Of a DNA stretch of 64,000 nt, positions 1,850-42,400 are shown piece after piece. The stretch comes from Mytilus californianus (lineage: Eukaryota), in assembly GCF_021869535.1 (NCBI RefSeq), contig NW_026262604.1, forward strand, positions 43,090,001 to 43,154,000, written 5' to 3'. Numbering within the stretch: position 1 is the stretch's first letter; each line of letters begins with the position of its first letter. Position numbers and translations under genes: made by a program. Under the pieces are notes generated by a model. That model was not told the DNA's origin, did no database searches, and saw nothing but the letters and a program-made list of their open reading frames with translations.

Positions 1850-4018
1850 CTAAAGATGACATTTTTTTTTTCGATAAAGATTTGAAATAACTGCTTAATA
1901 TCAAAGTATACTAACATTTAATATACCTGTGCTAGTTCCCAACTCACATATAATCCGGCTGGCCACGTTACTACCGGAGACCTCAACATTGTCAATAACA
2001 CTTCCCTGGAAAATGTGTTATCCAAAGGTCCGAAATATCGTGAGCCTAAATCCATCAATTGGAAATACCACTTCAAAATACTGTTGGATTCGGTCTTGGA
2101 TTACGCCAGGCAACGGGCTAAACGCGAGAAAGAAGACGTAGATACTCTTTCCGAATGGATTTAGGCTGTGCGGTCGTTGATACTAATAAGAATTGAGAAA
2201 CTAAAAGGGTCTATCAATACCCATGCTACGTTAATCTTTAAAGACCCAAATGTTGCAAAACACTCGTCCTACCTCCATGACAAATACGTTGTTGACCCCG
2301 CCGATTAAGCCCCAAACAACATCGTTTTTGTGTGAAAATCTCATTACATAAACTGCTTGATAGATGAATTAGGTATTGATAATTCACTTGGAAACTCAAC
2401 ATATACCCTCACGAGACTTACCAAAGAGGAAATCCTGGATAATCATAGGTCTGTTCTATGTTCCTTTGGAATTTCAACCAAAGATGAAGAACTGGATCTT
2501 CCATCACTGTATTGGATACCTACACTACATAAGTGTCCCTACAAACAACGGTATATTGCTAGGTCTTCCAAGTGCTCCACGAAACCTTTTTCTATATTAT
2601 TAACATCTATTTTATCAGCAATCAAAGCCGGGTTTCAAAGTAATTGTGAAACTGCCTATTCTAGAGGTGGCGTGAATCAGATGTGGATACTAAAAAAATC
2701 CAAATATCTTTTAGAGTACATACAATCTTACACACTCTCATCTTGCAATAGTATTAAAACAATTGACTTTTCTACACTTTACACAAGTATTTCCCATTCC
2801 AAACTGAAAGACAAATTGAAAGAGTTGGTATTGCTTTGTTTCATAAAAAAAAATGGCGAACGTTGATACAAGTATCTTGTCTTTGGGAGGGATAAATCCT
2901 ACTTTGAAAAGAATCACTCTGATTAAAAAAAAATTCTCTGAAACTGACATTATCAAGATGCTTGATTTCTTGATTGACAACATAGTTGTTACGTTGGGAG
3001 GACATGTTTTTTCAACAGACTGTCGGCATTCCAATAGGAACCAATTGTGCCCCTCTTCTTGCTGACTTGTTTCTTTATTATTATAAGGCTGACTTCATAC
3101 AGGAACTTCTTAGGAAGAAAGATAAGAAGTTAGCAATATCCTTTAACTTTACTTTCCGCTATATAGATGATGTTCTCGCACTATATAATTTAATTAATAT
3201 TGAACGCATCTATCCAATCGAACTTGAGATAAAGGATACAACAGATAAGGTTGAGTCTGCCTCATATCTTGACTTACATCTAATAATTGACAAGGAGGAT
3301 CGGTTGAAAACAAACTTTACGACAAAAGAGATGATATCTGATTCCCAATTGTGAACTTTCCATTTCTATGTAGCAACATTCCAGCAGCGCCTGCATACGG
3401 AGTATATATCTGCCATTTGATACGATATTCCGGGATTGTATTTCTTATCATGATTTCCTTGTTAGGGGGTTGCTATTAAACCAAGAGTTCCAAATGATGA
3501 AGTTGAAATCATCCCTTCGTAAATTTTACGGACGCCATCACGAGTTGGTTGACCGTTATGGAATAACCGTTTCACAGATGATATCGAATATGTTCCTTAT
3601 GTCGTAATCAGGGTAATTACAATCCACTTCCTTTTTCACCACGAATGTGACCTACCGAATTAGACTATTTACCGGATTTGTAATAACACGAGCAACACGA
3701 CGGTTGCCACATGTGGAGCAGGATATGCTTACCCTTCCGGAGCACCTGAGATCGCCCCCAGTTTTTTGTGGGGTTCGTGTTGCTTAGTCTTTAGTTTTCT
3801 ATGTTGTGTCTTGTGTACTATTATTTGTCTGTTTGTCTTTTTATTTTTTAGCCATGGCGTTGTCAGTTATTTTCGATCTATGAGTTTGATTGTCCCTCTG
3901 GTATCTTTCGCCCCTCTTTTAATACTGAAACAATAAGACAAAAAACCCTCGATATAATCTAGAGAAACAGCTTTCATCCCATTAAAAGGAATAGTTTGCA
4001 AGATATCAATATCTGTAT

Positions 4019-16910: not shown

Positions 16911-17143
16911 TCATTGATTCATGTAAACCTCATCGTCTAGTTCATCCAATTCATTATATCCATGTTCCGTACAAATTTCGTAGTCACCAAAAAAGTGGGA
17001 TATATACTCAAATGTTATTCGAGCATCGGGGTCTTTAGACCAGCAATCTATGGCATGATCATAAATAGCTTCCGGACAACAATCAGGTTTTATGTGCCTT
17101 AAATCCCCTTTTATTCTGTTAAATATCTCTGGATCTTTCAAGC
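16911..17143 (-). CDS. Kinase last exon: subdomains X-XI and Tyr tail
   Basis: Acceptor TTTTTCAG|GC; CWSKDPDARITFEYI..FGDY...TEHGYNELDELDDEVYMNQ*. Confidence 0.92.
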
Positions 17144-20100
17144 CTGAAAAATAAACAAGAATATTAATATTACTAAATGATATTTTTTATGGCATGTTAG
17201 ATTAGTATTTGTTAAGATTAGATAAGATTAGAAAACGAATGTAAATCATAATTTTAACAATGTATTTAAACAAAATCTGCAATAACATTGGTTCAGATTA
17301 TTGATTTATATTGTTTTATTTCAGACAGGTAATTTGATATCTTGGTAACCTACGTTGTAAGGCGTTTTAAAAAAAGCGACCCTAAAATACAAATTAATGA
17401 ACAGTTGTTTGCTGTGCAAGCATATCGGGCACGCTTAGTTGTTTAAAAACAGTATATTACACTCTAATGATCATACATGTACCATCTGTGTTCAGGGTAT
17501 CATTCGCTTTCATTCACTAACCTATCGTGTATGTTGGCAATTATATTAAGACAATGCCCTCCTTGAAGTATATTAAAGAGCTTTCCGCGTCAGATCTTAT
17601 GCATCTAGAACTAAAAGACATTGAAAAAAATGTACAATTTGCCATAAAATGTGGGGAGCTATGAGATCAAGTATAATTTTTAATAACAGATGACACATTA
17701 TAGATGAACAGTATCCTGTTGTGAGTAAATTCATTTTAAGTCGGAATTTTGGCTTTCGCATTGTTCGTGAAAGGTTAATTCGTTCGATTCCTTTCTTAAG
17801 GTCCTTTTTTAAATGCTACTTGTCAATATAGAAAAAAAAAACTGATCAACCATATAAGGCTTAAAATTTGGTACGCCACGAGCGCTTTTTATCTCCAAAA
17901 AAAATCCTCAGTCAGGCTCGAATAAATTAAAGTTATCCAAACAGGTTTGACAAATATATTCAACATTATTACATACCATATGTTCTTCTGTTTATAATTA
18001 GTCGTAGGTTTATGAAGTTGTTGTTTTGACAGTTCAGTGAAATGCAATTCAATTTTCTTTGTTCTATTAAATTTGATATCAGATTAAGCATCTACTTCTC
18101 ATATGTTCAATGGTTTTTCGGATATTTTAATGTCAAATAAAATAAATGTTTTATGTTGAATTACTCGAAATACTGTTTGTCTACCACTAGTCATATATTG
18201 CCTTAGTCGTATTTGGTACAATTGTCGGAATTTGCGTTTTAAATGCTCTTCAACTTTGTTTGTGATGTGGCCTTCCAGTTTTTTTTTCGAGTGCCACTGA
18301 TGAGTTTCATGGAGAGTAGTACTTTTGATAAGCTTTTTCGTCATCATTTCGTTATCATGTAACTGAACTTTGGTGAAGGGTAGATTTTTGTGCTATTTTA
18401 CATGGTACGTTACCCACAAAAAAGTGTTTTGCAATTAGAAAGTGTATGCATTAAATCCTATAACAAAGATATATGAAAATAATATGCCTAAATACACTGC
18501 AATTTCTTACCAATTCAATACCGTTACCTTATTTGTTTTTTTTTACCAAGAACATATAATTCTTAATTTAATCTGTCATCTGGACACTTTACCTTCATAC
18601 GGTATTTTGCAATGTCCGAACACTTCCATTAAAAGTATTCCAAAAGACCAGACATCAGATTTGGTAGTCGCCTTTTCCCCTTCAATTATCTCTTGCGCTA
18701 ACCATCGAACCGGTGGAATAGTGCCTACATATAGTTAAATAACATGATATTTAAATGACAGCAACTAACCGTGTACTACTTTTAATCTTTGATCTTTGAC
18801 TACAATGGATTCAATAATATTGCGTTAAATTCAAGTTGGAATCAAAATTAATGGCTGCTTAATGTATCAGCCAACATATCGATTAATTGATTGGTTTTTA
18901 ACGCAAGTTTTAGCACTATTGGCTATAAGATGTCGGTAATTTTTTATTGAAGAAGGAAGCTGGGGTGCCCGGAGAAAATCACCAACATTTGGCAGGCAAA
19001 CTGATAATCCTTGTAAATTTGTATGGAGTCCAGGGATAATTTAATAGACATACGCAACTCATTGATATCCTGAAATGATAGTTCTATTGGTAATAGTAAA
19101 AGATCAATGATAAGTTGATATTGAAATTACAAGACCTCCAATCATGTCTTATTAACATATTAACAGCTTGTGTATAAATATAGGAAGATGTGGTATGAGT
19201 GCCAATGAGACAACTCTCCATCCATGTTACAATTTATAAAAGTAAACCATTATAGGTGCATGTATGATCAGATATATTTTTGATACTTACAATATTATAC
19301 CTATCATTTGATTTAATTAAAGCGTCACTTGTCACTTGTAAGTCTTTTGTAGACACGATGCGCATCTAGGGTGCAACATTATTATGAGCCTGGTATCTTT
19401 GATGAATTTTGATCATACTGGACGTGCCATGTATGCAGTAAACGGTCGTCAACTAGTGACTAAGCGGACATACAAATTAAACGCGTTCAATCGGATACAC
19501 ATTCGCAGTTCAATTTTAAACGTTATCATTCTGAATGCGGTAATTGGAGAAATCACACGCAATATGGGCAACCGGTGAATAAGTAGCTTTAGTTTATGTT
19601 ATGTTTTGTCAGCACCAAACTGTACCATGATTTTTATCGTCTTTATTGATATCAGAGATCTTATTATCAGTCAAAATGGTATAGCTATACAAAATTATGT
19701 AAACTAAAGACGTTTAGCATCAACAATAAGACGGTCTATGTTGTGACCTTTGCAATTTTATATTCAAGCTCGTGTAGATGTTACTTACGCCTTCGTTTGT
19801 GATCTATTGTATGGTCATTTGTCATATGCGCAAACTTGAACCCACAGACTTTTGGGTTCCAATTTGATCCAAATAATATATTGGCTGCTCTCAAATCGGA
19901 ATGAATGATCTCTCTGGTTCCTAGAAAATCCATTCCTTTTGCAATCTAAAATAAACCGTATAAAATGTAAAACGCATGGTTTGTTTTCTATATTGTTAGA
20001 ATTCTCTTTGGCCGTGAACGAATTCATGAATGCGGTAAAAGATGTTAAATCAACATAAAAAAGGTAGGTTTGTTTACATTAACCCCGAAAACTGTTATAT

Positions 20101-23100
20101 TCCGGCGATTTTTTTTGACAGACTATTAGCACAGACTTATTTAAGTTACTTACTAGTTTACATATATATTCCACCCCTGCATCGACATGACCAAGTGTGT
20201 TATGATAGTTCTCTGTTCAAGATAGTTTAGAATTTTAATGTAAGGCTTGCTGAGCTCTTGAAATATTTAAAATTTAAATATTAAGAGTGGAGAAAGATCG
20301 TAATATACGAGATATATATAGTGGTGGAATATGTTTCTCTAATGAGTTTTAGGCGATATCCAAACAAATTTTATCCTTTCTATACAAAGGTTTGAGGAAA
20401 GTTGTGTTCTTCTTATTATGACGTCATCAGGTATTGTCGCCTTTTTTTCATGACGCTACAATAGGAACTTCAGAAGAAATAAAAAAAAAAAGATTGACAT
20501 TATAATTGACATTCGACCAATTATTTGCCGAAAAACAAAGTTTTCTTTAGACATGAGAAAGATTTGTTTTCAAACCGATCATGAAAAGTGAAAATAGCAT
20601 GAAATTAGAGAAATATAGATTCCATCACTGCAACAAATGTGTTACGATATTTCTCCGCTCGAGACATTTAAATTTTAATATTCAAAGCTCGAATCTTGCC
20701 GAGCTTTTTGAATGATTATAATTTAGCTGTTGAGAGTGGAGAAATATCGTAATACACGAGTTAGTGGTGGAATATGTTTCTCTCATGATTTTTATCCTTC
20801 TTTTTCAAAGATTTGCAGAAAGTTGTGTTTTTATATGTGACGTCATCAGGCATGGTCGCCTAAGAAAATTTCACGTCATAATTAAATTTCGACAAATCAT
20901 TTGCCGAGAACAGATATTTCATTAGTTAGGAGAAATATTATTCTCACACCGATCAAGAAATTTGAAAATAGCACAAACATTAGAGAAATCCATATTCAAT
21001 TCTGCTGTTTACAAACATCGTGAAGTATCCGATAATGCGACCTCATCGACTTTATTTCACAGAACTTTATGTAAAACTTCTTACTCTAGTAATGTCCATA
21101 GGAACTCAGAAATGTTTGTGTATTACAACAACAAACGATTTAGTAGAAAAATACATCAGTCATTACAATATACATCTCGAGAAAATAATGAAGAACATAA
21201 ATATTGCACATTCTGTTTAAGGCGTCAACTACGTACTTGTTACCATAAATGAATGATCTGTGTAGTAATATAGACAAAGAAGACAATAGAAAATACGGTA
21301 AGATTGATAGAAAAAAACACGTCAAAACATAATTTGTTTGTAACAGAAAAAAAATATATACACTATTACTTTCACCTTAGATGTCATTTCAGTCATATTC
21401 CTCATAGATGTGTCCATTGATGTATGTTCATCTAATAAAATCTGATTTAAGCTATATTCCGTAAGATATTCCATGACTAGAGATACTGGATGTTGCTCTG
21501 TGCTTACTCCTATCATTTTGATGACGTTCTCGTGAGATGATCCCTTTAATATGTGAGCTTCTTTCAGAAAGGAGACGTGGTTATTATCAACGTTTTTCTT
21601 CACGGCTACTGTAGATCCTTGAAAAGTTGCTGTAAATAAGAAGTCAAAATGTTTAGCAGCTCCAATGATTTTTGGGATTTGATGGAATACAATTTGTGTG
21701 TGTGTGTGTGTGTGTGTGTTTAATTAGTAACTTGTATTGGAAATAATAGTTAAGTGCACATCATACAATGCATAAATTGATTGAGAAGAAGCGATTGTCT
21801 TTCAGATTCGGGAAAATAACTCTATATAGGTTTGAGATATTTTTTGATTTGACGTTTTCTGATATTAGTCTAAACAAAATTACTAGACAATCGCATTTCC
21901 AATAAACTGTCGTTCAGATTTTTCCAATTTAATTCAAAAATGTTAAAAATATATATTAGATTAGCACTAATCCAGGTTATAATATTCGGAAGCACGAAAT
22001 GTATAAAGTTTTCTTTCATTATGCATTGGCAAGAAAACTAAATTTACATTGTGTACTCCAGTTCTTGAAAATGTCTTTTTTAGAGAAAGTTAAATAAAAT
22101 AAAAAACGCAACGACTCTTTGAGATGACATAATAGAAATTGAATCTTAAATGACTTGATTGTTTAAAGTAACATGGGCTATTTCCAATTTTCTACAGCAA
22201 GATTGGTGACTTTCCTAAGTACATCCCCTTTTTTCACATTTTCTTTGTCAACATACTTCTTGTATGTTATCGATAGCTACCATCAACAAAATTGCAAGAA
22301 AATATGAGACCATGCGTGCCGCTACTTGGTTGGTGATTCCAGAGATTTGCTATTTAATATATATATTTGCATGCAACAATTGAAGGGTCTCCTGCGTGAC
22401 TTTGATGCAGACTGTTTGATGATCAGCTAAAATCTGATCAGCAGACTTAAATAAGTCATTGCATAAACATTTTAGTCATACATAAAGTTAAAAAAGTTGA
22501 CACTGTTTGGTAGATAATTATCCCCATGGTAATCATACCTCATTTCTGTATGTTCCTATTACAGATTAATGACTTTAATTTATTGTACGATTATTTCACA
22601 TGTTATATATTATTTTATTTAAACATTCCTTTCAATATGAACTGTTTTAAATTAACAATTGTTCGTTTAAACGTACCTTTCCAAACTCGCCCTGAATAAA
22701 CAGCCTTTACAAACCGATCAAGAGATGATCTTTTGATATCAGGAAACCATCCTACAGTGATACAATCGAACAGTAATTGGCCATGTTTTAAATGCACTAA
22801 TCACTGGCATTTTATTCAACAATATACTATGATTTAAAGATATAGATTTGAGAACTTTCACAGATAATAAAGCACTTTGCAATAAACTATGTGCGGAATG
22901 TGTGTTTCAACAAAATAATCATGGGATAATTATTCGATTCTACAAAAAAGAAATATTAGTATTAAAGCTGGTACATTTTTCCCTTTACAAACAACATTTC
23001 TAAACAATATTTCGGATGTACATTGATAAAATATTATGTATTTGTAGTGGATTTATGTTTTGATAAGGCAAACATCTGGGGGGAAAACACGCATAAATAA

Positions 23101-26100
23101 ACGTTACGTTTACTGAATTGGTCTCTGGAAAACCTGTTGACAAGTACAAAATCAAACCTAATCAATAAGTACAACAAAAACACATGCAGTTCATAGAGTT
23201 ATATAGAAGATCCAAAAGAGATTTTCTAACGCATTAGTCGCTGGTAAATTGCCAATTCCATAACATAAAAAAGAAGGACAAAAGGACAATAGTGTACAAC
23301 ACACAGAGTAGAAAGCTAAATACTGAGCAGTATAAACCATGCCAAATCTAATCATTATGCAAAAGAACCGTAATAATTAACAAATTTGAATTGTCAACCG
23401 TTTAATTGAAAAAAATTTCATAGAATGCAAATAATGATTTGCATTATATATATCTAGTCTGCATCCCAATATCCCACACATTAACCGTTCAATACACGTA
23501 CACGTCAACCAAATCCATGAATCCATGAAACGAAGACTATATTTTAAATATGCCTCAGATTTGTTTTTTAAACCATAGAGTTAGAATCCCGAACCTGGCA
23601 GCTGCACTCGACTCCAATCAATATTAACTTTGATTTTCAGTTTTCTGAACGAAAAGTCGGTTGTTTCTAACCAGTCCCTCCAGCTTCCTCTACAAATAGA
23701 AACTGACCACCACAAAATAGCACAATGGTGCTGAAAGTGGCACTTAACGGCAATCAGTTGATCAATTAATTGCCATGAAAGCTGTTGGAAAGACGTTTTT
23801 TTTCTTATGAAGATTCTTCTAGGCGACAGTAGTTTGCAGATGTTCGAATCTCGTGAATTGACTAAAAAAGGAACGAGACCTGATGTGTCGACAAGGTAAG
23901 CATCTTATGCTACGCATAAAAACCACTCTTTTAAAATGCCGTACGAAATCCAGACATTCGGAGAACATGAAATAATTTCAGTGTTATTTTAAATTTACTA
24001 GTGCTGGGTCGATACAACTGCCGGTAGACTATTATTCCCCAAGGCTACCGTCTACTCACTAGTCAGAATTTGTAATAAACGTTGATAATGAGGAAATTGT
24101 TATGAAACTTAAGGTACAAGACACTCAAACAAATTTAACGGAAGATGAATTTGGCTATATATTTTGAACCTTTATGGTCATACAGCATTTTTTCGCGTGT
24201 TCAAATCTTATGATCAGTGTCGTTCTTAGTGAAAGTAATCCAAGGAATTTTTTTTTCGGAAACACTAAGTATATTCGACTGTACGAATGGGAAATAACTG
24301 TCATAGTCCTATCTTGGTACAGCCTTGTTCCGGAGAAATGGTAAGTAAATCGTGGTCTTAACAATAGTGTCATTTGGAAAAATGAAATCACACACTTAAG
24401 GGCATACGATACAGTTTTGATCACACGGTGATTTTGTGACGAAAATTTGCATACTATTTTTAACCTAGTCAATTCAAATATGTAATAAAAATATACCTTC
24501 ATGTTCTATTTTTAGAGATAAATTGGGTCGAAATTTTAGACATTTGCTCAAAGTTTTTTTTTTCGACATTTCTAACCTTTGAACGGACACACCTAACTCT
24601 TTTGTTTCAAAAGATAACCACAAGCGGATTTGTGTAAGAACATTTGGAATATCGTCTAAACATAAATATACCATACGTTTGTGAAAAAAATCGGTGATTT
24701 CTTCATAAAAAGTGATACAAATAATCGTCATAAATAATCAAGTCATTAAAAAAAAAAGGATCCATGTACTCATTTTCTAGCTAATGATTAAAATCTGTCG
24801 AAAATGCATCTTTTCCCGATATTTCAACGTTTGACGACGCGAAAAATAACATTTTACGTTAGAAACGTTATTATCTCTCCTGTGACTGTATCGTATGGCC
24901 TTTAAGTGTTTCGTTACATTGGTCATGATGGTATAATGTGTTTTGATTGTGTATTTTATACATACCGGCCGAAGTTTTTGTTTTAGGTTCTGTACATGCA
25001 GATTTTGGATCTGAAAATAAAAAAAATATTTCTATAGGGAATGGATATATTTTGAGTCATTGTCATATGGTAGAATCATTCGCTGATATGTTTTCGTTGA
25101 TTTGTTATAAAGTTTACCTTAGTTTTACACTAGTAGTATGTGCTTGTGAACATAGATAAGAATGTTCAATCTGCGTATAAAAGGAAAAAAAAATTATCTA
25201 ACTCCAAGTAATTTTCCAAAAAGGGGGAAATGCAGAAAAAAACTGTCAAAATCAAACATTATACTTTGTCAAGTAACTGAATGAATCAGAAACAACTGTC
25301 ATTTTTTTTGTCTTGGCAAAGGGATATTCCGAAGAAAATGATAGATTAAACCTGGTTTTATAGCTAGCTAGACCTCACACTATTCTGAAAGTATCGTGGT
25401 GAGTAAACCAAACTCACATAATATGTTAATGGGAAAATAATTGGGTTCAAACCGCGCCAAAACTGAAAACATACATCATAAACACATAACACACCGACTA
25501 AAAAAATCAAACAAGCCTACAAATAAATGTCAAAAAGACTTATAATTCAGCGAAGATACACAACTGTTAAATCAAAAATACCCATGTATTTATTATTAAA
25601 TTTCGAATAAACTTTATTTTTATTTTCTCACCTAAGTACTGTGATGTGATGTGCTGTTTCGGGATATTTATTCCTTTGTTGCATTCAGAATTTTGACCGT
25701 GTTCATTTTCTTGACCTTCTTTATGCTTGGAAACAATTTCTTCTATTTTAACGGCAATTGATCCAAGTTTCTGAATACGAATGATTTTTGTATTGGCTAA
25801 TTTGATATCGAATTGCTGCAATTTAGCCTTAGTTGTCTCAAACCTCTTTTTGATACTAGACAACTCCTTGATCATATTTCCTCTAAGTCCAAATTTATTA
25901 TTTGTAAAATCGTAATTTTCTACAGATGCAAGATGTTGCAGAAACTCGTCCAAAGAATTTTGAATATCAAGAAGTTCTATTTTCTGGGTATTGTATGACC
26001 CTTTGCATATGTCTATTTCAGATAATAATTTCCCCTTAAGCTCAGACTCAAGCTTCAAAACTGTACACTCAATTTCTTGCTTTACTTCTGATATTGCATC

Positions 26101-26452
26101 AATAACTTCATTTTCTTGAACTGTGAGGTTTTGGTAGTTGTGTTCATTTAACTCTACCAATTCATGTACTGTGTTTTTTACCTCTGTACATTCATGTGCA
26201 ATTTCTTTGTACCACGAAGATGTTTGTAGAAATTTCTCTGTACAATCAGGACCTTGACCTTTAATTCCGTAAACCTCGTAACCTGTACTTGAAAAATTCA
26301 CCTCATGTTGTAACGTAAACTTGTTACGCTTATGTGCTTCTGCACAAGCCATGCACAACGGCTCTGAGCACTCAGTACACCAGGCAGCTGTACTGTTGTG
26401 TAAACTTCCTCGTTTGCACGACTCGCATAGTGGTGGAACTACCAGATGATAG
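16911..26452 (-). CDS. B-box/coiled-coil protein fused to a Src-like tyrosine pseudokinase (at least 556 aa; start exon unresolved)
   Basis: Exons 26452-25632, 22751-22677, 21629-21376, 19945-19789, 18724-18593 and 17143-16911 are all open with GT-AG. Phases 1,1,0,1,1 are compatible. Joining the first exon to the kinase exons is an inference from strand, phase and the absence of other coding sequence between them. Confidence 0.75.
18593..18724 (-). CDS. Kinase exon: subdomains VIII-IX (PVRWLAQE, KSDVWSFGILLME, PYE)
   Basis: Acceptor TATGTAG|GC, donor GAAG|GTAAAG, 132 nt. Confidence 0.92.
18885..19030 (-). mobile_element. Degenerate SINE fragment (same family as 5532-5798)
   Basis: GGAAGCTGGGGTGCCCGGAGAAAATCACC matches the reverse complement of the SINE core. 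Confidence 0.7.
19789..19945 (-). CDS. Kinase exon: subdomains VI-VII (IAKGMDFL, HSDLRAAN, KVCGFKFAH)
   Basis: Acceptor TTTTAG|ATT, donor C|GTAAGT, 157 nt. Confidence 0.92.
20250..21000. repeat. Duplicated fold-back element: direct repeat plus central palindrome at 20643-20751
   Basis: GAGTGGAGAAA.ATCGTAATA.ACGAG...AGTGGTGGAATATGTTTCTCT and later blocks occur twice, about 450 bp apart. Arms of about 50 bp flank an AATCTTGC loop. Confidence 0.75.
21376..21629 (-). CDS. Kinase exon: subdomains II-V (VAVK, FLKEA, HENVIK, LVMEY)
   Basis: Acceptor TTTACAG|CA, donor AAG|GTGAAA (an in-frame GTAATA lies 6 nt further on). Confidence 0.9.
22677..22751 (-). CDS. Kinase exon: linker and degenerate Gly-rich loop (WFPDIKRSSLDRFVKAVYSGRVWK)
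   Basis: Acceptor CTGTAG|GA, donor AAAG|GTACGT; aligns with Src-type WEIPRESL...FGEVW. Confidence 0.8.
23575..23765 (+). mobile_element. Degenerate SINE copy
   Basis: TGCACTCGACTCCAATC, CAGCTTCCTCTACAAATAGAAACTGACC and GGTGCTGAAAGTGGC are shared with the intact SINEs. Confidence 0.7.
24400..24901. mobile_element. Non-autonomous DNA transposon with TTAA TSD (Kolobok/piggyBac-like MITE)
   Basis: TTAA|GGGCATACGATACAGT ... ACTGTATCGTATGGCCT|TTAA. Confidence 0.8.
25632..26452 (-). CDS. Exon: B-box type 1 zinc finger + long coiled coil (RING-less TRIM-like)
   Basis: CESC-x12-CTEC-x4-CMAC-x3-H-x8-H followed by about 170 aa of heptad-rich helix. Acceptor AATTCAG|C (alternative at 26438), donor TTAG|GTGAGA. 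Confidence 0.88.
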
Positions 26453-28420
26453 CTGAATTAAGAAATTGGTTAACGTCAATGTATTTTAAAACTTAACAGT
26501 TGATGTAATTTGTATGATACGAACATATGCACAAAGTGTTATTTGTTTGTATTTTCTGTATTCGTTTTGCTGTCACTTTCTTAACTCTTAAAATACGATT
26601 AATGATATATTTATTTATATATTATGGCAGCTATATGTTCACATAAAATGGTCACATATCAGCATACATTTTTACAGTTTTATTTATCGTTTTATTCATA
26701 GATAACATGCCTATAAATATTTGATTTATCTGTCTAAAAACCTTTAAAGTGTTTTTTTTTGTCTTCAAAGTGACGAAATATCAATGCAGTTGAATGTTAA
26801 TTAAAGCCCTTCCATGATGTGTTACATGACAATTTTGTTTCCAAAAACAAAACATATTGAGGATAACAATTTAAACAAACTTTGTAGATATTTCTGTAAG
26901 TGTTTAATCTTTTATTGAGTATTAATTAAGTTATTCAATATTCTTTCAGGATTGTGAATTACGCTTTTCTTTTCTTATTTTTATTAACTATCATCCATAC
27001 AGCATGTGTAATACTACTCTGATTACTTCTAGATATAGCTGATACATCGTAATAGTGGGATAGACGTAATGTGAAAACGAATAGTAATGAACATAAGCCC
27101 CCCCCCCACCAAATGAGGAATATGACAAAATAGTTCAGCCAACGGGTAACATGTGATAGTTATATGATTATAATTAATCTATAATTCAACTTTCTTGTCT
27201 CGAATTTTCAATCATAAATAATATCTATGAAGGTAACAACGAACATAAATTGAAAATAACAATGAAGAAATGAATATAACCTTAAAGCTTTAACATGTTT
27301 AAATATGAATTTATGATGATTCTTCCCTCTACTGTCTTTAAAATACAAAGAAAGAAAACTCAATCACAGTGTACCGTCATTATTTAAATGCTCCGAAGAT
27401 GAATTTACAATATATTAATTCTGCTACAAATGAAAAGCAAAAAAAAAAAATTAAAAAAATTCACTAATTGCACCACTTGAAGTAAATCATGGAATCTTAA
27501 AAAAACGACATAAAATATTTCATTAATTAAAACCTAGCGCTGCAATAATTGAAACAAATAAAACCGTACAGCTAGAACCTTAACCTCGTGATAGTCATCA
27601 TTTCTTTAACTACTTATTTATTCAAATAAAAAATCAATTAGAATAATCTAATGCACATATACAGATACAAGCCAACAACAAAGTAAAGTCTGAAAATACA
27701 GTTTGATGAATACTGAAGAAATGGTTTGTCTTTATTGTGGAAAAAGTATTCATTACCTGTTGATTGACTCATGCAATGCTACTACTTGTTTTGCATTTTC
27801 AAGACAATACCGGTATGATGGTTACAGCATAAAAGCATAAAGAAATATCAAATTACATTTTTTTAAAGAATCCACATGCTTATAAGCATTCGTTTCTTTG
27901 TGTTTAAATAATATTTCTAATTGATTACACTCGCGATACAAAGTAATGAAATAACGGTTAAAAATTCAAAACAGTTCACGTATGCACACAAGTTCGTTTT
28001 ATTGTAGAAATTAAATGACCTCCCTATAAACATTACACAGTTATTTTAAAGTCTTACACAGTTCCTTTGTTCTACATTGATTGTATCTGGTGTACCTTGA
28101 TTATATTAATAACACATTTTCCTACTTATATAGATATTTAAATCTTGCAATAGATACAAATAAATATAAAGTTAAGGTTTATGAACCATTTTGTAGCCAT
28201 ATCAATTACAAAATTTTCAAAGGGATACAATATCAAAATAGCAAAGATAATAAATATTAGAAATGTGCCAAAGGACAACCTCTTTCAAAGCAACATTTCT
28301 TATTGTTTTATTGCATTTGATAGACAATTGGGATTTTGTGGCAATTAAGCTTTTTGCAGAAAATCTACAGACTTTAGTACAGAGATTTTCGTTATAAAAT
28401 TTTAAACATAGATTACTCAC

Positions 28421-29272: not shown

Positions 29273-31529
29273 CACTACAAACCAGTAAAAGTCTGAAATG
29301 GCCTATATCTGTACTCGACTGTACTGATTTTTACTCGACCAGTCTGAATTGGTCTGAATTTTACTCGACATTACTCGACCCCAGTCTTAACCATACTCGA
29401 CCGTACTGATTTGTACTTGACCCTTATCTTTGCCATTGAAAATAGTCTGAACTATTACTCGACCAGTCTGAGACAGTCTTAACCCATTCTCGACCTGTAC
29501 TCGACCAATTTGTTCAGTCTAAACCATACTCGACCAAAGGTCTGAACAATACTCGACCAGTCTGAACCATACTCGACCAGTCTGAATTGGTCTGAATTTT
29601 ACTCGACATTACTCGACCCCAGTCTTAACCATACTCGACCGTACTGATTTGTACTTGATCCTTATCTTTGCCATTGAAAATAGTCTGAACTATTACTCGA
29701 CCAGTCTGAAACAGTCTAAACCCATTCTCGACCTGTACTCGACCAATTTTTTCAGTCTAAACCATACTCGACCAAAGGTCTGAACAATACTCGACCAGTC
29801 TGAACCATACTTGACCAAAACACCTATACTTTTTTTTAATTTTAGCTGTTAAAATTAATTTCTTTTTTTCTGACATGACAACAGCCACAATAAAATAAAG
29901 ATATATATAAAAACATATTTTTACATCCTTACATCATGTACATGATTCTCAGATTTATCAAATATAGATAGTTAAATTAAATAATCTTATATAATAATTT
30001 AACTATATTAATTTTAAAGTTTTAGAGTTTTGTTAAAAAAAGATTTTCTTTTTACTAAAAACCACACCTTTACTGAGGGTAATAAAACCTTATTGAGGTG
30101 CTTCTTGTCTGGCATGTGTTTTTTTTTAACTTCATTTTCCTAAATTCCAAAAGAAAAACTATATAGGTTTCATGGTTACCTACACTAGTTATATAATTAT
30201 CTTTTTAATAAGGTAACAACAGCCAAAAAATCACTGAAATTGTTTAACCTTATATTAGAAATATATCTATTCTTATTATAATTTGGGATACATTATATAT
30301 AATATATATCAAAAATGGATAAAAAAATTAAAGAAATAGATAAAATTTTTCTTCTGATTAGTGGTAAAGTATAAAGTAATACCTCCTGCTTAGGGCAAAC
30401 TCATTAAAAAGATCACACCTGGTCAGAGAGTATTAATTTCTAATTAACATTCATTAAAAATTGCCATATCCTGTAAAACTTAAATCGCAAGGCCTTTTGA
30501 TTTCACTTGATAAGTAATACACGAGTTTAAGAAAAAAAGGGCTTTCTTTTTACCTGTAAAACACACATGTACTGAGGTAAATAAACCTTATTAAAGTGTT
30601 TCTTGTATGCCATGTCTTTAATTTTGACAAAAGTTATTTAAATTTAATTGAAATTAATTTTTTTCTGCAACTTTGGAACACATTTCCTTTTTTAAATGGT
30701 TATCAAGGATTGCTATGGAAGTTCTATTATCATGATTATATTAAATTCTTGGTTTTACAAAATAAGGTGTTATTTTTTAAATTTATTAAGTTGCTTTATA
30801 TACTATTTTAAATATATTTTAATAAAAAAAATGTTCACTGCATTATTAACTAAACTCATCTGACACCATAAATCTATACAAGGCTTAAGTAAATGATGAA
30901 AATTGTCCAGTAACCATAAAATATATCTGAAACGTTCAAAAATTTGAATAACATTGAAAATATTAGTCACAATTCAGTTTTGAGATTATTTGATCAGCTT
31001 GTTTTATTTTTATTTTAAAGGTGATATATATATATATATATATATGTAAGTCTTGATAAATATGGTGTTGAATTTATATTATGTTTATTGTGAAATTTTG
31101 GTTTCAATGCCATATTGAATACATTTTAAATTTCAAATTGTTGTTCAAATTTCTAGCCAGGGGAAATAGCTGTTAAAACAGTTCCTAAATTGATGAAAAA
31201 CAATAGATAGATACAAAATTTAGGTCTAGGTTGGTTAAGACTTAGTCGAGTATGTTTCAGACTAGGTCGAGTATGGTTCAGACTAGGTCGAGTATGGTTC
31301 AGACTAGGTCGAGCATGGTTCAGACTAGGTCGAGCATGGTTCAGACGAAAATAAAATGGTTAAGTACTGGTCGAGTAAAGGTCGAGTACAAGTTCAGACT
31401 ATTAAGTGTGGTTCAGACTACAGTCGAGCATTATCAAGTAAATTTCAGACCAATTCAGACTGGTCGAAGAAAAATCAGTACAGTCGAGTACAAATATAGG
31501 CCATTTCAGACTTTTACTGGTTTGTAGTG
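29273..31529. mobile_element. Non-autonomous CACTA/EnSpm-like element with subterminal repeat arrays
   Basis: Ends are CACTA...TAGTG with an inverted repeat of about 110 bp and many ACTCGACC motifs. There is an internal duplication of about 238 bp at the left end and about five 21-bp repeats (AGGTCGAGYATGGTTCAGACT) at the right end. No ORF; TSD unclear (TAA/TGA). Confidence 0.8.
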
Positions 31530-31919: not shown

Positions 31920-34716
31920 CGTTTTTTGATACTAAAGACATAAAGGCAAACACATGAAAGAAGGGATGAATCATTTGCATTCATGATTTATTTTTAAAAT
32001 CTTTCATATTTAAACTCTATAAATATCTCCTTTAATCAATCATCATGCTTCAAGTGCAGCTATGAAAGATTGGAAACACATCATAGTCCCAATTATTATA
32101 CTGAAAACTCAGCAGTTAAATTGTTGTGCAACCTACTGTATGTTGTAATGTGCTGATAGAAGGCAGCATCTTCAGTGAAAGTCGATCATCCCATTAGGTA
32201 CAATGGATTCATTTACATTTGTGAGATATTAAATTTTGTAGATTTCGTTTGTTAATGTAAACCATGAATTCAGATGTTCACCGAAGTATATATTTTCTAT
32301 TGGCTTGTTTACAGACTTAGCAAAACCACGAAATCAAAATCAAACGAAAAAATATGTCTTACTTAATCAAAAAAATAAATGAATCCACAGTAATTAAAAA
32401 GTAAACACTTTGTTATTAAATGATTCATATTCAAGAGAGGTGAAAGATACCAAAGGGACATCCAAATCCTCATACATTGCTATGTTTGCCAACTTTAATC
32501 TTGTGCTCTGTTCAGGTTAATCATATTAACATAGAATAGATCAATATTTAACTACTTATCACATTTATATGATGTTTATTGTTGAAGGCCGTACGGCTGC
32601 CTATACTTGCTTACTTTAACTTCATTTGCATTTTGGTGGATAGTAGTTTCATTGTATTAACTGCTCCAAGAAAATGTTGTCTTTCTCTATATATTGCCTC
32701 CTCTCTATCAACCTGACAAACCAAGTCAACTGCATTGATGATAAAGGAATTCAACAGGATGCATGTTATTGGGAAAAAGATCAAGACATCAAAATAAACT
32801 AATATTTCAAGTTATGCTTTAATTTTTCTCAGATTATTGCCATATCTAATAAATCGCATAAGGAATTAAGTCTTGTGAAAGAACTTTTATTTAAAACTTT
32901 CCAATTCAGGTTGATCTGTTCCTTGTTTCGTCAATTTTCTTATCCTTTTGAAAGTACAGTTTTTTAATGCTAGTTATATATTGCTATTCATTTGATTTTT
33001 TTGAAAAGCAGAAATTTGTATGTTTTTTTGTCATCCTTAAAGACTTTATTTGGTTGACATAAAAGCATTGACTGCATTGTTCACTTTAATCTGAAAGTTT
33101 TCATGCAAAATTTCTATAATAATCGAATTGACGTTATAATATGGTCAATAAAACAAGACGGCAAACAATCCTGCATAGTATTCCAACTTTTTTCCACGTA
33201 CCTCTACCCTGCAGACGGACGGACGAGTTTGGGGATGAACGGACGTACATGTGAGGGGACCACTACCATATCTCTCGCAGCCATGAAAATTGGACAAAGA
33301 TCATCAGCTAGGCCATTGCCTTCTTTCGTTCAACATGTAATCCGTTTTTCCTTTACAATCGCATAAAACGGATAATCAAAGGAGAAATGTATAAAGCAAT
33401 GAATATGAAAAAATACTGTTTTTGTAGTTATTAAATTCATTCTATTATCTGAATACCTAAAAGTCTAACGACACCAGATTGTTTTATCTTAAACTAATCA
33501 AAATTTACAACTCAACATTCTTCGTTCGTTGAACATATAATCTTTTTGTCTAGATATAAAGACTAGAAAACATGGAAAAAAATGCTATTTAAACCCTCAA
33601 TAAACATCTTTAAAGCACAACTAATTGATATAGTTGAGATATCATTCTTGAAAACATTCAACATTTAATAAATTTAAGGGAAAATGACAAGAATTATCAA
33701 TCGACAGTATTTTCTTTAAATGATGGAAAAGATGACCTACATAATATAGTTAACTTGATATCATTATGTTTTGAAAATAAGAAAAACAAATATTTCACGT
33801 CATGTTCCCTTGAATTTAAAAAGGTTAAGATTCAATTTAAATAGTTACTAACTATGTATTCCTTAAAGTTCTATTTTCGTTTGAGGTTTATGACAGTTGT
33901 TCCTACATGAATTTCCTGTTCTTCCTCGTAAAACGTAAAACGTTATAAGAATGTTGATTTAAATGAATAAAAGTATAATTCAAATTCAAATTCAAAGTAT
34001 TATAGAGATCAATATCAAATTATATAAAAGCCCTTGTTATGAGATGGCATCTGTACGTCATCTGTACGTCAAAATTACTGCAAAACAATGGAAAGATGTA
34101 AAATTGGAAGAAATGTATTACTTTCACTTTTAAAAGCAAATAAAAACTTGTTGTTCATGATTAAAAGGTCTGCTACGCGTGTGGTAAACTTGCTAAATAT
34201 GGAACAGAGAGTTAAGGCTGCAAGCGAGTTGAAAGGCAATTTCATGATATATTTACTGTTGATTTAATCATTGTCGTGCTTACAGACTTCTTGTTGCTTT
34301 TGTGGACATATTATCATTGCGTACAAGCCTATATACAATCACCTTTACCCCTAAAAACCATAAAAATTGATATCATAGGAAAAAAACGAATTCACATTAT
34401 GTCAAAAGTATTATTGAGATGTCACTTGCCGATATAACAAAAATATTATAAAAAATATGACATTAACCTTTCTGTGTCCAGTCGTTTATTGTATTATTTT
34501 AAACCTGGCAATTGTTTTTGTTCAGATCCTTTTATAGCTTACTATAGACATTTATTTTACTCATTGTTATACGGTAGGAGAAAGATGTTTCCATCTTCAT
34601 CATTTGGTTTCCTTAGTTATGTCGTTTCATCGCCAGCCATATCAAATCTGAATTTTAAAAACAATTAACAAATCAAAAATCAAAGCAAATAAAAAAAAAA
34701 AAAAATACAATGTCGA

Positions 34717-34945
34717 TAATAATTAGAAAAAGTAAAAAGTACTTACGCATGTGAAAACGTTATTTAATTCAATCTATGCACCGCTGTATAACATCAATAA
34801 TAATTAGAAAAGGTACTCTCGCAAGTGACAACCTTTTTTTATTAAATCTATGCACCACTGTATAACATAGATAATAATTAGAAAAAAAAGTACTTACGCA
34901 TGTGACAACGTTATTTTATTTAATCTATGCGCCGCTGTACAACTA
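34717..34945. repeat. Three-copy minisatellite (unit about 72-81 bp)
   Basis: TAATAATTAGAAAA...TACTTACGCATGTGA.AAC...ATCTATGCACC.CTGTATAAC is repeated. Confidence 0.85.
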
Positions 34946-37900: not shown

Positions 37901-39460
37901 GAATTAGGAATAAATGAGCACTCAGGTAATCCCACTTACAAAACATATCATTTGACAAGGATGAAATTTTGGCGAATCATAAGTCCTTCATGGCTTCAAT
38001 GAACATTACATTGAACGGCAAATCGGAGGACTTACCTTGTTTGTATTGGATACCTAAGCTTCACAAAATTCCGCACAAACAACGGTACATTTCCGGCTCA
38101 TCTGCATGCTCTAGAAAGGAATTATCCATACGATTGACAAAAATTCTGTTCGCAGTGAAAGAGGGTCTTTAGAAATACTGTGAAGTTGTTTACACCCGTA
38201 GTGGTATTAACCATATGTGTATTCTAAAAAATACAACGAAGAACGTCTGCATAATTTTAAATCTCGATCATTCTCGGAAAAAAGTTCTATCAAAACTTTT
38301 GATTTTTTAACCCTGTATACCACCATTCCCTATGTAAAATTGACAAATCGTCTAAAAGAAACAATCCACATACTTTTCAACATACAGATGGTAGCATACG
38401 CTATAAATTTATTACTTTGGGATACCATATGGCATGTTTTGTTAATAGTGAACAAAAAGGTAAAACATGCTACACAAAGGACCAAGATATCAGAGTGCTG
38501 GAGTTTCTTATTGACAACATATTTTTTGAATTTGGAGGTAGACATTTTCATCAAATTGTCGGCATTCAAATAAAACAAACTGTGCTCCTCTCCCTGTCGT
38601 CCTCTTCTTATTTTCATACGAGTCGGAGTTTCTACAGACACTTGTCAAAAACAAGAAAACCAAAGAAGCAAGATCATTTAATTTCACATTCAGATATATT
38701 GATGATATTCTTTCCATTAACAATCTAAACTTTTCTGATTGGGTTCCTTTAATATATCCTCCAGAACTAGAAATTAAAGAAACAACAGACACGGCGTCTT
38801 CTGCATCATTTTTAGACTTATATCTCGAATTTGACATAAACGGTCATCTCAGTACCATAATCTATGACAAAAGAGACGATTTTAATTTGAAATTATCAAT
38901 TTCTCCCACCTTAGTAGCAATATACCAACCTCACCTGCATATGGGATATACATTTCCCAACTCATTATGTATCCAGAGCTTGCAGCTGCTACTCAGACTT
39001 TGAAAACCTTGTTGCTTAATATTCCAAACTTTACAAATAATACACGATGGTCTTGAAGTTTAGATTCTAGGGACTGACGTTGTTTATCATCTAAATTACG
39101 TGTTAGAGCTTTTTTATATGTCTTTGTAAAGTATTGCTTTTACTGTTTGGTCTATTTTTGGTAATATCCATTTGACATGGCTCGGTACTTATACATCCCT
39201 TCATTGTATTATTGTGCTATGGTACATTTTTGTATTTTTGTCTTTCGTTTTTGCTAATGTGCTTTTTTTTACAGATGGGTGCAGTCCTAACCTGTACAAA
39301 AGTTAACGTGGTGCAGACTGCTTTCCAAGTTAACTTGAGAAATTTTAAGCAGACAAGCAAGTTAACTTCGTTGTTGCTAGACCAGGTCTAGGTCTGCTTT
39401 TTTAGGACTGCTGCAGACCTATCGACAAGTCTGCCGCAGACCTTACCTGAGGACAGGTCT

Positions 39461-42400
39461 GATTCAAGATTCAAGATTCAAGATTCAAAGTTTTATTTAG
39501 AGTCGATATTCCATAAACTACATAAACACAAGATCTAGTGAGCTTTTCAAATCGACTTAATAACAAAATACAATACACACATACAAAAGTCATGAAAACA
39601 ATACAATTTTAAACATATAATGCATAGTAAGATACCATAAATGACATATATAAATTAAAAGCATAGTACACTTAAAACATAGCACAAGTTAATAATAAGA
39701 TTGCACAAATCAAATAGTCAAAATAAGATAGACACAGGTATAACACTATATGCATGCACTGCACTGGCATGAGCTGTTACTTGGATCCCATGTTTGTACC
39801 AATTTTTTGAATTGGTCAAAAGATGTTTCCATTCGACAATGGTTCGGCAGCTCATTCCAGATTTGTGCAGCATTATGGCGAAACGATTTTAAGCCATACT
39901 TAGTATTTCAGACTCTTTGGAGTACTGCTGTTTCCTGTGATCTTAAATCATACTTGTTAATTTGTATATCAATCAAATCATGAAGGTAGCTCGGATTTTT
40001 TTTGTGAATTATTTTAAATGTTTCTATTGCGATTGTTTTTATTCTTCTTATTTTTAAAGATGGTAATTTAGATTTTTCTAGCAGTTTTTTGTATGGACTA
40101 TCATAATCTTCATAAATGAATCTAGGAGCTCTTTCTTGAATTTTTTCCATTTTAAAAGAATTTTTTTCGCTACAGTAGTGCCAAATTACTGGACAATAGT
40201 TAAAATTCGAAAGAATGAATGAGTAGTATACTGTTAACCTACCTAGCCTGTTTAAATATTTACGCATACGTTTTAGAATATTTAATTGTCTTGATGCCTT
40301 TTTACATATTTCACATATATGATTGTTAAAGTTTAAGTCCGAATCTATAGTTATTCCAAGAAGTTTAACATTTTCTTCACAATCAATTTTGTTTCCATTT
40401 AAATTAAATATCAAATTATGTTTATTTGTTTTTTTTCCAATGGCTAAAGCCTGGAATTTGTCAGGATTAGCCTTCATTAAATTTATAGAAAACCAGATTA
40501 TTAGATTTAAACTATCAGTTTCTAAACTTTCAACAACTCTATCTAAATCCTGATCACTATATGATACAGTGTTATCATCAGCATTAATATAAATGGTGCT
40601 GTTTTGTACAAAATGAAATATGTCATTTATGAAGACATTGAAAAGAACTGGACCAAGAATTGACCCTTGTGGTACACCTTTAAACATACGATCCCATTCA
40701 ATGTAAGAACTTCCAATTTTAATGCGTTGTTTTCTGTTTTCTAAATAACTTTTTAATAATTTTAGAGAATTTTTAGATAGACTGTATGCTTCCAATTTAA
40801 GTAAAAGTAAATCGTGCGGTAAACAATCAAATGCTTTACATAGATCCATCAAAATTGCAGCAATAAATTTGTTTTGGTCCAGAGCTTTTTCCAGTCTTCT
40901 ATTATTTTAATAAGTGCAGTTTCGCAACCAAAACCTGATCTAAATGCCGAAATAAGAGGATGGAAATGTTTATTTAAGAATTCCTGGAAGTTCTTACAGT
41001 GAATGGGATCGTATGTTTAAAGGTGTACCACAAGGGTCAATTCTTGGTCCAGTTCTTTTCAATGTCTTCATAAATGACAGATTTCATTTTGTACAAAACA
41101 GCACCATTTAAAATTATGCTGATGATAACACTGTATCATATAGTGATCATGTATAGCTCTTTCATAAATTTTGGAAATACATGGTAACACACTTATAGGT
41201 CTATAGTTTTCTTTATCAAGAGAGTAATTCTTTTTAAAAAGTGGGGATACCTGAGCAGCTTTAAGATTATCTGGAAAAATTGAGCTTTCAATTGATTTAT
41301 TAACTAAAATTTTAATGGGATTTGATATTACTGGCTGAAATAATGTCATATCCAGTAGCTTTACTTAATTTAACCTATTTATTTGTTTACTCACAAACTC
41401 TTCTGTTACAGGTTTAAAATTCAACTCATTATAATCAGTTTTAATTTCTTCAATTTTGATTATACTTGGGTGATTTCTGTCTATTTTTATGTTTTTATCT
41501 CCTATATCTTTAGCTACATTTATGAAAAATTTATTGAAAATTTCTGATACCTCTTTAGGATCACTGAGAATTTTATCATTTTCATATAAAATTATGTTAT
41601 TGTTTGATTTAATGCTTTTACTTGATAACAATGGTTTAATAGTGGAATAAAATGTTGTTGATTTTGGACCACCAGCAGTTCTTTCATAAAAATATGTTTT
41701 TATTGAGCTCTTTTTTTATTTTTGTCACAATATTTCTCTGTCTTCTGTACAACTCCCAGTTGGCATCACTTTTGTTTTTAAGAAATCTGTTATGGTACAT
41801 TCTTTTTTTTGTAAATTGCACTTCTTAGATCTTTATTCATAAAGGGTGCAGGTGATACTATTGATCTTCTTTTTTTCATTCGTATATGCTTGTCAATTAT
41901 GTTAACAAATTCAGATTGAAAATTTGAATACGCTTCATTGACATCATCAACTGACAGCAAATTATCAAAATTTACACAATTTAGTTCATGTACAAATTTT
42001 TCCTGATCAAAACTTTTAAAACTTCTGTAATTTATAAATACCTTTTTAATTTTAGGTACAAAACCTTTAAATGAAACGAAATTATGTTGTGATAATCACT
42101 GAGCCCACAATTAAAATTAGATATATTTTGACAAAAATTTGGTTTGTTTGTCAGGATAACATCAAGTAAAGTTGGTAATGCATTTTTTGTAAAACATGTA
42201 GCTTTTTTAACTATGTTTGTAAAATCAAAAACATCACACATATTTTTTAGAGGTATACACTTTTCTTCATCTAAACAATTGTAATTTAGATCACCAATAA
42301 TAATAACATTGTCATATTTATCAGATATTTTATCAAATGTTTTATTAAAGTCTTCAATAAATAAATTATCATTGAGGGATGGGGGTCTGTAAAGACCACA

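Follow-up and report, generated by a model that had tools for sequence, protein, structure and literature searches.

The question raised by this locus is whether a B-box/coiled-coil exon and a set of Src-like kinase exons, lying on the same strand of the genome of the mussel Mytilus californianus, belong to one gene, and what a protein of that composition might do. The locus was studied within a 64,000-nucleotide (nt) stretch of contig NW_026262604.1 (RefSeq assembly GCF_021869535.1, positions 43,090,001 to 43,154,000 of the forward strand), called here the window and used for all coordinates; the whole stretch is AT-rich animal DNA laden with repeats. An earlier interpretation made from the letters alone (the sequence-only reading) had proposed that a TRIM-like module without a RING had taken the place of the SH3 and SH2 domains of a Src-like pseudokinase. 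We found a single intact minus-strand gene of eight exons, running from 35043 to 16911 and encoding 620 amino acids (aa), the product of which carries, in order, two B-boxes, a TRIM-type coiled coil, a disordered spacer of about 50 residues, a kinase-like domain derived from Src and an acidic tail that has two tyrosines. The architecture and expression of this 620-aa gene we hold to be nearly certain. The original observation was confirmed in part and the interpretation built upon it was supported, with the exon map corrected in three points.

Gene structure and transcript

Stop-to-stop translation of the minus strand revealed at 26457-25570 an open stretch of 296 codons, in which heptad-rich sequence follows a B-box-like Cys/His cluster, and tyrosine-kinase profiles matched five shorter minus-strand open stretches between 22800 and 16914. 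The frame of 26457-25570 holds no in-frame ATG before its first cysteine, so that an upstream exon was required. A length-restricted, word-indexed search with the translation of this exon (exon 2 of the final model) gave only fragments of 188-333 aa; searched without length restriction against 1.84 billion representatives, the same translation gave one long relative, P0005, of 620 aa and with 65% identity to the query over P0005 residues 50-320. Pfam recognized two B-box stretches and PK_Tyr_Ser-Thr in P0005. When P0005 was aligned to the window by tblastn, the matches included a start-codon exon with a further B-box (35043-34898, 82% identity), a short exon near 25010-24966, inside the supposed repeats, and all five kinase exons, which were 100% identical. 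The resulting coding sequence is uninterrupted (1863 nt, 620 aa), and all seven introns are GT-AG, the borders having been taken from the sequence.

Exon 1 (146 nt, 35043-34898; supported by tblastn with P0005, Pfam and a contig end) begins with the ATG at 35043, encodes B-box 1 (residues 8-48) and ends in phase 2, with its donor GT at 34897-34896. Exon 2 is the 821-nt minus-strand exon (26452-25632) of the sequence-only reading, with an AG acceptor at 26452 and a GT donor after 25632; it is entered in phase 2, ends in phase 1 as had been proposed, is bounded by RNA joints at both ends, and encodes B-box 2 (residues 58-98), the coiled coil and the start of the spacer. The sequence-only reading had seen a first B-box here, with the second reduced to an HxC remnant; the exon 2 B-box is instead the second of two complete eight-ligand B-boxes, the first of which lies 8.4 kb upstream in exon 1. 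Exon 3 is a 45-nt mini-exon, DPKSACTEPKTKTSA (25010-24966, phase 1-1), which contributes part of the spacer and was placed from contig joints and sequence; its length is the same in M. edulis and M. coruscus. It was overlooked when the interval between exon 2 and the kinase exons was described as containing only repeats, a description that does hold for much of the remaining introns, which are filled by high-copy elements.

Four sequencing runs were mapped to positions 21300-27299, one of which, X1, bears the same organism label and could only be guessed to be RNA. Contig 1 of X1 (514 nt) consisted of 21376-21629, 22677-22750, 24965-25010 and 25632-25757, each of the three gaps being bounded by CT..AC, or GT..AG as read on the minus strand. 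Contig 5 (855 nt) covered 25881-26452, and its loose end had a unique match in the window at 34898, the last base of exon 1. The spliced joints in X1 are 34898>26452, 25632>25010, 24966>22751 and 22677>21629. Since these contigs lack the introns at exact splice sites, they derive from spliced RNA; and since they are nearly identical to the window (1-4 mismatches per exon piece), the paralogue being far less alike (69% protein identity over exon 2), they come from the window gene. They join exon 1 to exon 2, and exons 2, 3, 4 and 5 to one another, and thus place the B-box exon and the kinase exons in one transcript. The direct 25632 to 22751 junction of the sequence-only reading is replaced by two joints through exon 3. 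The candidate 5' exons that had been suggested at 27772-27757 and 28421 are unused, the contig running from 26452 straight to 34898; with an ATG only 7 residues ahead of B-box 1, a further coding exon upstream of exon 1 is unlikely. Runs X11 and X12 were rejected as splicing evidence, as their contigs cross exon-intron borders and are hence DNA.

Two observations weigh against this reading of the transcript. The RNA support amounts to two contigs of low depth (about 4x), from one run guessed as RNA, which do not overlap each other; and the roughly 6% sampled of X13, a run of raw RNA reads from this species, gave 0 exon reads and only repeat-derived ones, which tells nothing of tissue or level. 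The gene is expressed, but expression is low or tissue-restricted.

The gene was also found in related mussels. The M. edulis gene for P0046 (L001) has eight exons of identical length (146, 821, 45, 75, 254, 157, 132 and 233 nt), and the M. coruscus locus of P0047 (L002) has exons 2-8 at 96-99% nucleotide identity. The Nei-Gojobori ratio of nonsynonymous to synonymous substitution rates (dN/dS) relative to M. edulis was 0.22 overall, 0.095 for the kinase-like domain, 0.09 and 0.13 for the B-boxes, and 0.47 for the coiled coil and spacer (dS 0.26-0.43 per region, 0.33 overall). The kinase-like domain is under strong purifying selection.

The public annotation bears upon whether the B-box and kinase exons could be mere neighbours, that is, two separate genes, a non-functional chimera or an artefact of annotation. 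In GCA_021869535.1, a 620-aa B-box plus kinase gene is called over 18,133 bp, exactly the ATG-to-stop span in the window, with Lectin_C 9 kb downstream. The gene is thus already predicted by NCBI, with the same span and product length, yet no paper on it was found. NCBI LOC127721854, on the other hand, is annotated as a gene of 240,847 bp whose end coincides with the stop of the window gene. Its five isoforms share one N-terminal cassette, which is not that of the window (69% identity in exon 2, 82% in exon 1), and from this difference and the length drawn it follows that two paralogues lie about 220 kb apart. The kinase exons of the isoforms occur in two versions, in the combinations B-B-B-B, B-B-B-A, B-B-A-A and A-A-A-A, where A is the window's; isoforms X2, X4 and X5 carry the N-terminal cassette of the upstream paralogue on some or all of the window kinase exons (16911-22751), always with the upstream exons first. 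The mixed isoforms may represent read-through splicing, or they could result from cross-mapping between the paralogues. In either case a 240-kb gene with isoforms mixing the exons of two paralogues stands in the public record, which means that models here can be unreliable, and this, together with the low expression, is what an artefact has in its favour. The window-specific spliced contigs that join exons 1-2 and 2-3-4-5 speak against it, as do the intact frame, the identical exon lengths in M. edulis and the overall dN/dS, and we consider such an artefact very improbable next to a single eight-exon gene.

Several repeats were seen within the introns of the gene. A 74-nt unit, made up of the last 46 nt of exon 1, the donor site and the next 28 intron bases, is tandemly triplicated into intron 1 (34715-34943). 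The second copy has lost the GT; the third keeps CACATGC|GTAAGT at 34746 along with an upstream ...TACAG, and could serve as a cryptic 37-nt exon or an alternative donor, while the RNA contig uses donor 34897. Intron 1 also holds tandem repeats at 29332-29817 (a 238-nt unit in 2 copies of 97% identity, built of 20-21-nt subunits) and at 31221-31346 (a 21-nt unit repeated 6 times, the reverse complement of the motif of the former). Very high-copy repeats occupy 23700-23900, 24300-24900 and 25300-25500 in introns 2 and 3, where the summed contig depth of the DNA runs was 5,000-120,000, and the one at about 24396-24435 also occurred among the raw X13 RNA reads. At 21686-21732, some 60 nt upstream of the 254-nt exon's acceptor, is a (CA)n-type microsatellite.

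The kinase-like domain and its Src ancestry

The kinase exons follow on the same strand down to the stop at 16911, as the sequence-only reading had them. Exon 4 (75 nt, 22751-22677, phase 1-1) is the phase-1 linker exon that had been placed 2.9 kb downstream of exon 2; it encodes the end of the equivalent of the SH2-kinase linker (GW...), beta1 and a degenerate glycine loop. Exon 5 (254 nt, 21629-21376; Pfam PK_Tyr_Ser-Thr 1.8e-11, with the joint 21629|22677 and a contig end at 21376) contains the VAVK lysine, the alphaC glutamate and the hinge. Exon 6 (157 nt, 19945-19789), preceded by a phase 0 intron shared with a snail Src gene, contains the catalytic loop HSDLRAAN, GFK in place of DFG, and a tyrosine-free activation segment. 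Exon 7 (132 nt, 18724-18593), with a length and flanking intron phases as in the same snail gene, provides the P+1 loop, AQE in place of APE, and alphaF; and exon 8 (233 nt including the stop, 17143-16911) provides the end of the C-lobe and the acidic tail TEHGYNELDELDDEVYMNQ, the first tyrosine of which aligns with the regulatory tail tyrosine of Src. Single kinase exons of the window matched Pfam kinase profiles at 1.8e-11 to 7.9e-14, and P0005, the kinase half of which is identical to the window's, matched PF07714 PK_Tyr_Ser-Thr at E=3.2e-57 over residues 355-593.

We aligned six family members, including the deep M. coruscus paralogue P0048, with four Src-type kinases. Every member keeps the VAVK lysine, the alphaC glutamate (FLKEA), and the catalytic Asp and Asn within HSDLRAAN. 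Every member has likewise lost the GxGxxG motif, the glycine loop being xSGRV with one Gly and a 2-residue deletion; has GFK for DFG, with loss of the Mg-binding Asp; has HSD for HRD, with loss of the Arg; lacks the activation-loop tyrosine (activation segment NDHTIDHKRRRTIPP, without Tyr); and has AQE for APE. A kinase-like domain is usually called a pseudokinase when the Lys of VAIK, the Asp of HRD or the Asp of DFG has been lost. With GFK for DFG, the domain is by this usage a predicted pseudokinase, and the pseudokinase status proposed from the window holds across the whole family; the low dN/dS indicates that the fold is still in use. On these motifs the kinase-like domain is probably non-catalytic.

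The same alignment bears on the possibility that the protein is an atypical but active kinase, in which the coiled coil would pair two domains, as in the oncogenic TRIM-kinase fusions, and let them trans-phosphorylate their tails or other substrates by a metal-independent or otherwise unusual mechanism. Activity of this sort has been reported for CASK, which has Gly in place of the DFG Asp. The retained beta3 Lys, alphaC Glu and catalytic Asp and Asn fit an active enzyme, as do the strong constraint on the domain and the conserved tail tyrosines adjoining it. Loss of the DFG Asp, the glycine loop, the HRD Arg and the activation-loop Tyr, along with the change in APE, was found in every member including P0048, however, and dead kinases typically carry several independent lesions at the ATP/Mg site. 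We judge activity rather unlikely, and prefer a domain that is conserved without catalysis.

In the tail, TEHG-Y-[N/D]-E-[L/V] aligns with TEPQ-Y-QPG of Src, at the position of the regulatory tyrosine. This first tyrosine is followed by an acidic run and then by a second conserved tyrosine in Y-x-N-Q (Y-K-C-Q in P0048). A canonical ITAM (the tyrosine-based activation motif of immunoreceptors; YxxL/I-x6-8-YxxL/I) was not present in the tail of any aligned member: the first motif (YNEL/YDEV) and the spacing of 7 fit, and the second (YMNQ, YTNQ or YKCQ) has Gln at +3 in place of Leu or Ile. The N-terminus, MDLPCK, has no Gly2 myristoylation signal. Pfam detected neither SH3 nor SH2 in P0005, and tblastn searches of the window with three Src N-termini and with the RING/B-box/SH3/SH2 N-terminus of a sponge protein found no SH3, SH2 or RING coding sequence above chance level (E at least 0.08). 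The absence of SH2 and SH3 exons noted in the sequence-only reading is borne out by these searches and by the spliced contigs, which contain no such exon between the two parts; neither of the findings named at the outset as contrary to that reading, separate transcripts or intervening SH2/SH3 exons, was seen.

The sequence-only reading attributed the protein to exon shuffling, and both structural and genomic comparisons now support this. Among the top 60 PDB matches, 58 were to Src-family kinases, with HCK, Src, Lck and Fyn at E about 1e-47; EGFR followed at 3e-43. The kinase region alone, ranked against full-length candidates, gave five Mytilus proteins first, then the two-kinase sponge protein P0096, and then SH3-SH2-kinase proteins at 31-36% identity. 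For the intron comparison, the snail Src-family protein P0118 (Biomphalaria) was threaded on its gene (L005) and both sets of introns were projected on the alignment. Four of the five introns in the kinase region are shared with the snail in position and phase: three fall at the same column and phase, VWK|A (phase 1), SK|I (phase 0) and PYEG| (phase 1), and the phase 1 intron of the activation segment lies within one column of the snail's, beside a one-residue gap. The penultimate pair of exons measures 157/132 nt in the window gene and 154/132 nt in the snail; one snail intron is missing from the window gene. Only the 5' intron of the kinase region, ahead of G338-W339, is specific to the window gene, and it marks the place at which the SH2 side was replaced. 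The phase 1 end of exon 2 followed by the phase 1-1 exons 3 and 4 is the classical signature of exon shuffling, and indicates shuffling at the DNA level; retroposition or convergence as the origin is argued against by the shared Src introns and the phase 1-1 junction exons. It is thus shown that the kinase module is of Src origin and was acquired through DNA-level exon shuffling. The gene offers a clean, datable example of the process, with phase 1-1 exons at the junction and the Src introns still in place.

The B-box/coiled-coil module, its relatives and its surroundings

Both B-boxes (residues 8-48 and 58-98) have the full ligand spacing C-x2-C-x12-C-x2-C-x4-C-x2-C-x3-H-x8-H. Pfam scores for pieces of the window fell just below the gathering cut-offs (ANCHR-like_BBOX 26.8 versus 27; zf-B_box 21.8-22.5 versus 24.1), exon 1 giving 26.8 bits for ANCHR-like_BBOX and 22.5 bits for zf-B_box; the B-boxes of the paralogue exceeded the cut-offs, at 28.4 and 27.7. 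A profile of exon 2 homologues matched B-box1 of TRIM28 at E=1.4e-8. An AlphaFold2 model of exon 2, built from a 10-row alignment, had a mean predicted local distance difference test score (pLDDT) of 62.7, with a poorly modelled zinc finger and a disordered end; it showed a helix of 99 residues (79-177 of the exon translation, pLDDT 85-95) and a return helix of 23 residues (188-210). For the kinase domain, a model also made from a 10-row alignment had a mean pLDDT of 48. Pfam gave no RING match on P0005 or exon 1, and tblastn with the sponge N-terminus found none in the window, so the RING-less character assigned by the sequence-only reading stands. Judged by its domains, RING-less TRIM-like is a fair description of the module, and the lack of a RING keeps it out of the TRIM family proper.

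A tree placed the window protein as sister to P0047 of M. coruscus (100/98), with P0046 of M. edulis, then another M. coruscus paralogue (P0045) and the upstream paralogue of M. californianus branching next; P0048 and three fragments from unidentified runs made up a deep second clade. The 561-aa model of P0048 (L004), from a gene that spans 24 kb, has no equivalent of exon 18724-18593, which may represent a missed exon or a decaying copy. Full-length relatives came from no species other than M. californianus, M. coruscus and M. edulis, in word-indexed, clustered searches that limit coverage, and the architecture would so far appear confined to Mytilus. A 64-member cluster with zf-B_box plus PK_Tyr in the ESM Atlas may be the mussel family's own. 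A search of the literature found no description of a B-box/coiled-coil-kinase protein. The suggestion of an undescribed bivalve family therefore stands as to the absence of a paper, and is narrowed by the restriction of the relatives found to Mytilus and by the existing NCBI gene call. Among distant matches to exon 2, P0012, P0017 and P0022 (about 950-1025 aa) combine a similar B-box with fn3 and a septin/AIG1-type GTPase domain; they provide a further example of the shuffling of B-boxes onto various effector domains.

Downstream of the gene, on the same strand, a C-type-lectin-like open frame occupies 1578-1910 (minus strand). The M. coruscus orthologue has a C-type lectin gene about 9-10 kb downstream on the same strand, and the presence of this neighbour in the window, in M. 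coruscus and in the M. californianus annotation shows that local synteny is conserved. Frames resembling those of long interspersed nuclear elements or other retroelements (reverse transcriptase, endonuclease) were seen both upstream and downstream of the gene, at 39911-43465 (minus strand) and at 2336-3351, 38211-39000 and 56600-58700 (plus strand).

Proposed function and comparison with known systems

Taking the evidence together, we lean modestly toward a non-catalytic, multivalent phosphotyrosine scaffold, or modulator, of Src-type signalling as the best overall explanation of the protein. The mechanism in its particulars is more tentative, at somewhat short of an even chance. The protein itself would not phosphorylate. 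Its coiled coil would pair two chains, as the coiled coils of TRIM proteins do, and the B-boxes may link the dimers, so that the assembly would present at least two copies of a Src-shaped docking domain. The tail tyrosines, in Y-[D/N]-E-[V/L] and then Y-x-N-Q, would be phosphorylated by active kinases and could recruit SH2 proteins. By established SH2 specificities, Src-family SH2 domains would be expected to bind the first motif and those of the Grb2 type the second.

Several points count against the scaffold. Foldseek with the exon 2 model gave no match at E<=0.001 (best E 0.017), although TRIM72, KAP1, TRIM5alpha, TRIM28 and PML held the top, non-significant ranks. Relative to the close M. 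coruscus orthologue, the dN/dS of the kinase-like domain was 0.51, from 18 changes only and with dS about 0.04, too shallow a comparison to interpret. The conserved beta3 Lys, alphaC Glu and catalytic Asp and Asn make some unusual activity conceivable. The assignment of the SH2 motifs is a prediction from established specificities, and the lack of nucleotide binding, dimerisation, phosphorylation of the tail and recruitment of partners are likewise predicted.

The uneven evolution of the two halves bears on a further possibility, that the protein is a decoy or sensor. A dead Src-shaped domain with a Src-like tail might capture regulators of Src (Csk-type kinases, phosphatases) or pathogen factors, and the B-box/coiled coil would then turn such capture into an assembled complex and an immune output. 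The tail indeed keeps a tyrosine at the Src regulatory position, and the catalytic loop its Src-type signature, without catalysis; and evolution has been much faster in the B-box/coiled-coil half than in the kinase half, the M. californianus pair of paralogues being 69% identical in the former versus 89% in the latter, in line with the dN/dS values of 0.47 and 0.095. The family is small, multi-copy and lineage-restricted, and strong expansion in bivalves is listed for a B-box orthogroup (PMC8382680). It is the bait, however, that would be expected to evolve fast, yet the assembly half does so; the whole of this reading is likewise inferred, and we regard both the capture and its conversion into an immune output as doubtful. 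A bolder extension, which we offer as speculation with a small chance of being correct, is a Mytilus-specific hub in which a TRIM-like lattice module clusters a Src-mimicking dead kinase together with its phosphorylatable Src-type tail, and serves either as a decoy or guard through which interference with Src-family signalling would be sensed, or as the equivalent in an invertebrate of the ITAM-type adaptors, nucleating assemblies of SH2 proteins in immunity. The scaffold remains the reading we favour. On that reading, a lineage would have built a new signalling scaffold from a Src gene and the B-box pool expanded in bivalves, and the family, being small, fast-diversifying and restricted to these mussels, would be of interest for haemocyte signalling.

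Among known systems, the kinase-like domain is closest to the Src family (Src, Hck, Lck, Fyn, Yes and the snail P0118), with 31-36% identity and an xDLRAAN loop, and it keeps the Trp at the junction of linker and N-lobe, the alignment of the tail tyrosine and four of the five introns. Unlike these kinases, the mussel protein is without SH3, SH2 and Gly2 (it starts MDLP), has GFK, HSD, a degenerate glycine loop and no activation-loop Tyr, and has a tail extended by an acidic stretch and a second Tyr. With the TRIM or RING-B-box-coiled-coil proteins (TRIM28/KAP1, TRIM72, TRIM5alpha, PML) it shares tandem B-boxes placed directly before a predicted long helix, of about 100 residues, and a predicted return helix. 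It differs from them in having no RING, and so no E3 ligase module; in that both B-boxes share the eight-ligand spacing, B-box 2 matching TRIM B-box1 domains; and in ending in a pseudokinase rather than PRY-SPRY, NHL or COS-FN3.

Conservation of a kinase fold under selection, with key catalytic residues missing, is a property shared with pseudokinase scaffolds such as KSR, STRAD and JAK JH2, and with CASK, in which DFG is changed to GFG. To our knowledge, none of these has a B-box/coiled-coil N-terminus or derives from the Src family. B-boxes and a Src-type kinase do occur in one predicted protein in the sponge Dysidea avara, where P0153 (a prediction named 'Src-like isoform X2') has the architecture RING, four B-box stretches, SH3, SH2 and kinase; the pairing of B-box and tyrosine kinase is not unique to mussels. 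In the sponge protein, unlike in the mussel, the TRIM part precedes a whole Src, with RING, SH3 and SH2 kept; because it also keeps DFG and its kinase is only 28% identical, it represents an independent event.

A parallel in layout is provided by the somatic, oncogenic fusions of TRIM proteins to kinases (TRIM27-RET, TRIM24-BRAF), in which an active kinase is driven by forced dimerisation. There, as here, a B-box/coiled coil replaces the regulatory N-terminus just ahead of the kinase domain. The mussel gene, in contrast, is carried in the germline, is conserved across species under purifying selection, and has lost its catalytic motifs, and it may be seen as a natural, inherited and conserved counterpart of the cancer fusions, with the kinase apparently switched off yet still under selection.

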